From positions 64,666,001 to 64,730,000 of the forward strand of contig NC_043007.1 in assembly GCF_006345805.1 (NCBI RefSeq): a stretch of DNA of 64,000 nt. The letters run 5' to 3'. The stretch comes from Octopus sinensis. Lineage: Eukaryota. Each line of letters starts with the position of its first letter. The stretch's first letter is position 1. Under the pieces are notes generated by a model that ran no database searches, was not told where the DNA came from, and was given only the letters and a program-made list of their open reading frames with translations. Of this stretch, positions 4,781 through 5,962 are shown one piece after another. The translations under genes and the position numbers were made by a program.

Positions 4781-5962
4781 GTATGGATGCTAAGGAAGTC
4801 AATAACAAAGAATTTTACATAAAATTAAATCAAAATTAGTAATAAATAACAACCAGAGCCAACTTCAATATTAACCCCAGTACTATTATCAGCATATTCA
4901 TTCTGCCTTTCATAACCTCCTACTATAACTGATCAACTAAGTACCATTTATATATTGAGATTGCATTGAATTTATCTCATCCCTCAAACAAATTAGTTTA
5001 TTTCCTGCTAAAAGAAATAATGATAATCCATGTATCAATCAACAAATGTACAGACATGCAAAATTCTAATGTTTGCTCATTCCTTTCAATTTAAATTGCT
5101 CTAGACTCATTATATCTTGATCACTCCAGACTTACTCAGCAACATATTACATCAGTAAATAGTATATACTGATTACACATGGAGATTGAGGAAGTTTTGA
5201 ACAATCAAGCTATGACTAGAGTTGAAGAAAATTAATTCTGTACTTGTATACATTTGCAGATCCTTTGAAATTTTACAGACTTCTACAATCATTGCTTCTA
5301 TTTTTACTACAATGCCAAAATTATAGCACTGACAAGAGAACTTATTTCTAGAGTGAAAAGGGAATCTCTTTGTCCTGAATGAAAAACTCTTAAAAAAAGT
5401 TTTCAGTCCTAGCTCTCTGAGCTTATCTTTACTCTGGTTATGATTTAACTTTAAGTAACATTTCATATTCATTCATTTATCATTTGTCCATACAACCATA
5501 TAATTTTCATTTTCTCTCCAAAGCAATATCCTTTTCATAAACATTTAAATTTTCCAGTTTCACAAAATATAATTATTTCACAATCCTTTCAAACTTTTAC
5601 TGACTAAAACACTAACAAGACAATAACTTAGTTTTAGAATAGATAGTGAATCTCTATGTCCTGAACAAAATCTCTTGAAATAAATGTTCAGTTTAATAGC
5701 TGAAATCATTAGATTTTAAGTAAACTAACTGATACACTATTTCTTTTTCACACATGTTACTTGTTTCTAGGCAATAAGGTAATAATTATCTAAACAATCA
5801 CTTTTTATTGAATCAAATTGTAGATAATACTAAATTTACTGCCCAATAGCTGCACTACCTTAACTGTTCATCTTCTGTGATACATGGAACTAAATTTTAA
5901 TCACCAAAATACAAAAGTGCAAGAAATCAAAGTCATTTTGAAAACATGAAGGAAAAGGATAT
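4781..5962 (-). other. U12-type (minor spliceosome) AT-AC intron of Nav1, 1182 nt
   Basis: 5' splice site ATATCCTTTT at 5962-5953, branch site TTCCTTAGC at 4797-4789, terminal AC at 4782-4781. Removing it gives in-frame LVHP-LFS. Confidence 0.93.

Follow-up and report, generated by a model that had tools for sequence, protein, structure and literature searches.

A U12-type AT-AC intron at the start of domain I S1 in the Nav1 gene of Octopus sinensis

Introduction

The alpha-subunit genes of vertebrate sodium channels carry an AT-AC intron of the U12 type, known as intron 2 in SCN4A and intron 3 in SCN5A and present also in SCN1A, SCN2A, SCN8A and SCN9A. It interrupts the codon that follows a histidine, is preceded by a 119-nt exon, begins with the 5' splice site ATATCCTTT, and its U12 branch motif lies 10-12 nt from the terminal AC; a 129-nt exon lies two exons downstream. 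SCN4A intron 2 is reportedly the classic in-vitro model, through the work of Wu and Krainer. A minor intron has been listed in every human VGSC and VGCC alpha gene by Baumgartner et al. (2019), who credit Wu and Krainer (1999) (PMC6865273).

The same feature is found well outside the vertebrates. Fux et al. (2018, PMC6259924) describe a U12 site at D1S1 in invertebrate and basal-metazoan Nav1, Nav2, Cav1, Cav2 and Cav3 genes, and state, citing Spafford (1999), that it is conserved across nearly all Nav and Cav channels known. Among the sequences in their alignment set are the mollusc Lymnaea stagnalis, the cnidarians Nematostella and Polyorchis, Trichoplax and a choanoflagellate, and they describe NALCN as being without the D1S1 U12 site. 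Molluscs are relatively rich in minor introns according to Larue and Roy (2023, PMC10639083), whose surveyed species include Octopus sinensis; the octopus intron itself was not shown in any paper that we found. In fruit flies a U12 intron is reported from one calcium-channel gene alone and from no sodium-channel gene (PMC2831892). Here we describe a 1182-nt AT-AC intron in an octopus Nav1 gene. With a probability of about 95%, we consider it to be the Octopus orthologue of the ancient AT-AC intron, dependent on U12, that interrupts voltage-gated sodium and calcium channel genes where domain I S1 begins.

Results

A Nav1 gene on the minus strand

The window, by which we mean the whole 64-kb stretch of DNA that was analysed, contains four coding exons on its minus strand, and these are the first four of a Nav1 gene. 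The exons, the introns that separate them and the signals of the AT-AC intron are as follows.

10732-11006, minus strand: coding exon 1 of Nav1; ATG at 11006-11004, ends AAG and then GTTTGT; its N-terminus matches the Nav1 proteins of O. bimaculoides and Hapalochlaena
6082-10731, minus strand: intron 1, ordinary GT-AG (GTTTGT...TGTTACAG), which includes a mariner-type transposase fragment
5963-6081, minus strand: 119-nt exon preceded by TGTTACAG; 39 residues and the CC of a Pro codon; also 119 nt in snake, chiton and snail
4781-5962, minus strand: U12-type AT-AC intron, 1182 nt, phase 2, its signals read directly from this strand
5953-5962, minus strand: U12-type AT-AC 5' splice site ATATCCTTTT, the same 10-mer as in a snake SCN9A-like gene
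4789-4797, minus strand: putative U12 branch-point sequence TTCCTTAGC, with its sole A at 4791
4781-4782, minus strand: terminal AC of the intron, which pairs with the AT 5' end
4697-4780, minus strand: 84-nt exon, domain I S1; third base of the Pro codon, then LFSLVVILTIVCNCVFMTMKDNPLPTA; GTAAGT follows
1227-4696, minus strand: ordinary GT-AG intron, which like 6082-10731 flanks the exons on either side of the AT-AC intron
1098-1226, minus strand: 129-nt exon, domain I S2-S3; 43 residues, flanked by TTCTAG and GTAAGT

When the translated exons were padded with X to full-length size and used as a protein query, the top matches were sodium-channel isoforms of O. bimaculoides and NaV1 of H. lunulata. 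The unpadded query had returned short proteins alone, apparently since matches were restricted to lengths near that of the query; these were short Nav fragments of no more than 59% identity and one cephalopod exon-1 ORF. Over its first 203 residues the window protein is 97% identical to O. bimaculoides Nav1, and it is 95% identical to H. lunulata NaV1; across exons 2-4 both proteins match it at 100%. The identity of the four window exons to octopod Nav1 marks the host gene as Nav1-type, one of the four-domain voltage-gated channels. The O. bimaculoides orthologue carries a DEKA (D/E/K/A) selectivity filter and HlNaV1, from Hapalochlaena lunulata, has been described as a neuronal NaV1; the host gene is therefore Nav1. 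The two octopods differ in their pore loops, with FKGWTE in Hapalochlaena NaV1 and FKGWID in O. bimaculoides beside the domain III K of the filter, and SAGWHS and SAGWDG, respectively, beside the domain IV A; the differing Hapalochlaena positions are published tetrodotoxin-resistance positions.

A two-codon indel and a few substitutions set exon 1 apart from that of O. bimaculoides; together with the matches of a LINE open frame described below, these differences place the window in an octopod species other than O. bimaculoides. The length of exon 1 is 275 nt, where 276 would be expected. One base is absent directly 3' of GGTAAA (10823-10818). Around 10815-10825 on the minus strand the frame reads ...EAGK and then shifts; at this place O. 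bimaculoides has EAGKGLPPS, Hapalochlaena has EAGKSLPPS, and the DNA of a related cephalopod reads GGTAAAGGCCT. Because exons 2-4 are intact, the loss is most likely an assembly indel. A gene model taken from this assembly would have a wrong or truncated N-terminus as a result.

Several other elements were noted in the window. The transposase fragment in intron 1 is of the mariner/Tc1 type (7029-7400, minus strand) and consists of a 121-aa ORF with Pfam Transposase_1 and DDE_3 matches and a HPPYSPDLSPTDYH motif; the plus strand has a similar fragment at about 45854-46075. A LINE-type reverse transcriptase occupies 24201-25628 on the plus strand as a 476-codon open frame with Pfam RVT_1 and zf-RVT matches and a local GC content of 51%. 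Of the named proteins, those of Argonauta hians and Octopus sinensis are its closest relatives. Matches at 64-76% identity also come from metagenome proteins (JGI) and from a protein that carries a Herbaspirillum MAG label, a pattern suggestive of contamination of those data sets with cephalopod DNA. Very long microsatellites of the TA/CA type, read as YIYIYI... in several frames, fill 38000-43000, 60000-64000 and many shorter stretches, where GC content falls to 21-26%. Within the AT-AC intron (4781-5962) a repeat search returned nothing relevant, as did an Rfam search of the whole 64-kb window.

Splice signals and the junction

A sequence-only reading of this locus had proposed an AT-AC intron, in an invertebrate Nav1 gene, that starts ATATCCTTTT, ends AC and splits a Pro codon, and our reading of the minus strand confirms each of these points. 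The 5' site agrees at 9 of 9 positions with the consensus /ATATCCTT(T) quoted in PMC6259924. The putative branch site agrees with TTCCTTRAY, in which the A may occupy either purine position, at 8 of 9 positions and has its A at the first purine. Counted from the intron's 3' end, this A (4791) is base 11; it precedes the terminal C by 10 nt, and GCATCCATAC separates it from the end; there is no polypyrimidine tract, and the distance lies within the range of about 10-20 nt (optimum 11-13) for U12-type introns. Sequence alone could not make the U12 assignment any more secure.

The placement of the intron is fixed by the protein. Joining 5963 to 4780 splits the Pro codon as CC|A (phase 2; ...ICILVHP|LFSLVVILTIVCNCVFMT) and yields ...ICILVHP|LFSLVV..., which is identical to annotated O. 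bimaculoides Nav1 and to H. lunulata NaV1; the RefSeq isoforms of the former and the latter protein read across the proposed junction without a break. The split codon follows the His of ILVH, and the Pfam Ion_trans match starts exactly at the junction, which is the start of domain I S1, so that position and phase are those of the Nav/Cav D1S1 minor intron. We listed all frame-keeping pairs (GT-AG, GC-AG or AT-AC) that lie within ±45 nt of the two intron ends. No GT-AG pair in that range keeps the frame. Two GC-AG pairs do keep it, with poor donors, and would insert 11-17 residues absent from homologues, and an AT-AC pair shifted by 2 nt gives HPFFSL, not HPLFSL; AT5962-AC4781 is the sole pairing that reproduces the homologous protein. 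The 5963/4780 junction is predicted from homology and from proteins, annotated or deposited, of two octopod relatives.

The 9-mer ATATCCTTT is not rare by itself, with 3 occurrences in the window against 1.7 expected. On the gene's strand, ATATCCTT occurs exactly once in 64 kb, as does TTCCTT(AA/AG/GA)Y followed by AC 6-13 nt later, and these single matches sit at exon edges that protein homology fixes independently. The chance of finding them at fixed positions is about 1.3e-5 for ATATCCTT and about 1.6e-5 for the branch motif with AC, or about 2e-10 jointly. The placement of both signals exceeds chance; the 9-mer ATATCCTTT alone does not.

The same intron in other animals

Orthologous introns were found in two molluscs and a vertebrate, each with ATATCCTT directly after a 119-nt exon and in the same codon phase as in octopus.

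Octopus (the window): 119-nt exon, 5' site ATATCCTTTT, branch motif TTCCTTAGC, 10 nt after the A through AC, intron of 1182 nt, then 84-nt exon
Snake, SCN9A-like gene: 119-nt exon, 5' site ATATCCTTTT, branch motif TTCCTTGAC, 11 nt after the A through AC, intron of 858 nt, then 90-nt exon
Chiton, Liolophura: 119-nt exon, 5' site ATATCCTTG, branch motif GACCTTAAC, 10 nt after the second A through AC, intron of 306 nt, then 87-nt exon
Land snail, Bradybaena: 119-nt exon, 5' site ATATCCTTG, intron of more than 10 kb, whose 3' end and downstream exon lie beyond the sequence covered

The snake gene bears out the earlier proposal that the octopus intron shares codon, phase and 119-nt upstream exon with the vertebrate SCN minor intron, and the two agree also in the 5' site, in the spacing of the branch motif from the terminal AC and in the 129-nt exon. 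The vertebrate exon lengths of 119 and 129 nt given in the earlier reading proved half right: the upstream exon has 119 nt, but the exon directly downstream has 84 nt in octopus, 87 nt in chiton and 90 nt in the snake SCN9A-like gene, and the exon of 129 nt (1226-1098) comes after it. Octopus and vertebrate genes differ further in the split codon (Pro versus Ser) and in the branch motif (TTCCTTAGC versus TTCCTTAAC or TTCCTTGAC in vertebrate SCN paralogues).

In the Nav1 genes of a tick, a spider, a stingless bee and a bdelloid rotifer both exons are fused with no intron between them, whereas the intron that follows, ahead of the 129-nt exon, is retained; the U12 intron has been cleanly lost from these genes. 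Among the other molluscs and the arthropods compared, the intron is thus present in chiton and land snail and not in tick, spider or bee. These losses agree with the reported loss of the intron from fly sodium-channel genes. A degenerate-pattern scan of metagenome contigs with the 84-nt exon gave no matches.

The branch site

At the place of the second A of the consensus, the octopus branch motif carries a G. Either consensus A can serve as the branch point, and the optimum distance to the 3' end is 11-13 nt, according to Turunen et al. (2013, PMC3584512). Sheth et al. (2006) likewise give two U12 branch matrices, with A at either purine position, of which "U12-BPS-A9" has A at the first. Olthof et al. 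(2019) list, for human and mouse minor introns, 50 cases of TCCTTAG, 368 of TCCTTAA and 197 of TCCTTGA, so that TCCTTAG makes up about 8% of the TCCTT-purine-purine branch sites in their table. The minor intron of HMBS, a gene unrelated to Nav1, has the same core TCCTTAGC as octopus, conserved between mouse and human, and among vertebrate SCN paralogues and orthologues A and G alternate at the first purine position. A literature text search for TCCTTAGC and UCCUUAGC matched primer sequences alone. The octopus branch site belongs to a recognised minority class and is no oddity; its A-to-G departure from the consensus, to which the sequence-only reading drew attention, is real, but its supposed strangeness does not stand.

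Discussion

By analogy with U12 introns that have been characterised, the AT-AC intron of octopus Nav1 is probably removed by the minor spliceosome, a process that would depend on U11, U12, U4atac and U6atac. We envision a scenario in which the U11/U12 di-snRNP would recognise ATATCCTTT via U11 and the U11-48K protein while U12 would pair at the same time with TTCCTTAGC. The sole adenosine, 4791, would bulge and serve as the branch nucleophile, with G4790 in a G·U pair and C4789 paired with a G of U12; by our count, this arrangement would form as many base pairs as the common TTCCTTGAC. As the 3' site, the AC 10 nt downstream would then be picked by its distance and not by a pyrimidine tract, and joining 5963 to 4780 would give ...ILVHP|LFSL....

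Not every AT-AC intron is a minor intron, and a second, U2-type class that the major spliceosome removes is concentrated in the very genes considered here, with 10 of 15 examples in a human set lying in sodium-channel genes. These introns have a GTAAGT-like 5' site with G at +5, whereas the octopus intron, which begins ATATCCTTT, has C at +5. Its U12 branch motif lies 10 nt from its 3' end, it has no polypyrimidine tract, and its vertebrate orthologue is listed as a minor intron; removal by the major spliceosome is accordingly extremely improbable, and we reject it. The idea that the motifs are chance matches and that the real junction uses GT-AG or GC-AG sites nearby could draw on the three occurrences of ATATCCTTT in the window and on a U2-like TTTTCAG that lies 9 nt inside the downstream exon. 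Its TTCAG, though, is conserved Leu-Phe-Ser coding sequence that is found in snake and chiton as well, and this idea must also contend with the lack of a frame-keeping GT-AG pair near the intron ends, with the extra residues that both GC-AG options would add and with the joint probability of the two signals. We assign it next to no weight, and chance motifs and alternative GT-AG junctions are rejected alike.

A different kind of doubt concerns the locus as a whole, which could be a decaying copy whose intron signals are unused relics. The single-base deletion just after GGTAAA breaks the frame of exon 1 and, if real, could mean that the copy is damaged. Against this, exons 2-4 are intact and encode the same protein sequence, at 100% identity, as O. 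bimaculoides Nav1, every splice signal is preserved, and the loss of one base beside short runs of A and G, the one such defect seen, is typical of assembly errors. We therefore consider a pseudogene very unlikely and retain the reading of the locus as a Nav1 gene with a U12-type intron.

The sequence-only reading had also raised the possibility of a slow, rate-limiting splicing step. Extended to its full form, this idea holds that the octopus lineage may have fixed the single-adenosine branch site TTCCTTAGC, which would make the intron unusually slow or easily regulated and thus a post-transcriptional throttle on Nav1 in cephalopod neurons. Minor introns as a class are reported to be slower to splice (PMC3584512). 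On the scale of Olthof et al. (2019), motifs with TCCTTAGC score about 75-79 and consensus motifs about 90-96, so a modest efficiency cost is conceivable. Nothing found here singles out this octopus intron as unusually slow, and we regard a throttle of this kind as unlikely.

The intron is older than the bilaterian ancestor to which it had been dated, since the U12 site is described from nearly all known Nav and Cav channels and a choanoflagellate is in the alignment set of Fux et al.; it predates the split between Nav and Cav channels. The direction of the earlier dating was right, but its depth was too shallow, with cnidarians, Trichoplax and a choanoflagellate already in that published set. 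Published work already covers the feature, its occurrence in molluscs and how old it is, and the octopus intron is a known feature in one more species. Octopods add one further lineage to a documented pattern in which the intron has been kept in molluscs, vertebrates and cnidarians and lost in the sampled arthropods and a rotifer, and no question about minor splicing or sodium-channel evolution is changed or opened by this addition.

The practical value of the finding lies in annotation. That standard GT-AG predictors mis-model this exon holds for two snail gene models: the Bradybaena model P0047 reads through ATATCC into the intron and stops after ...THPYP, and the Nucella model, P0051, goes off course there too. 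It does not hold for the RefSeq models of O. bimaculoides, which have the junction right. Mollusc Nav1 models need an AT-AC junction at this position, and those built without one will truncate or derail at domain I S1.
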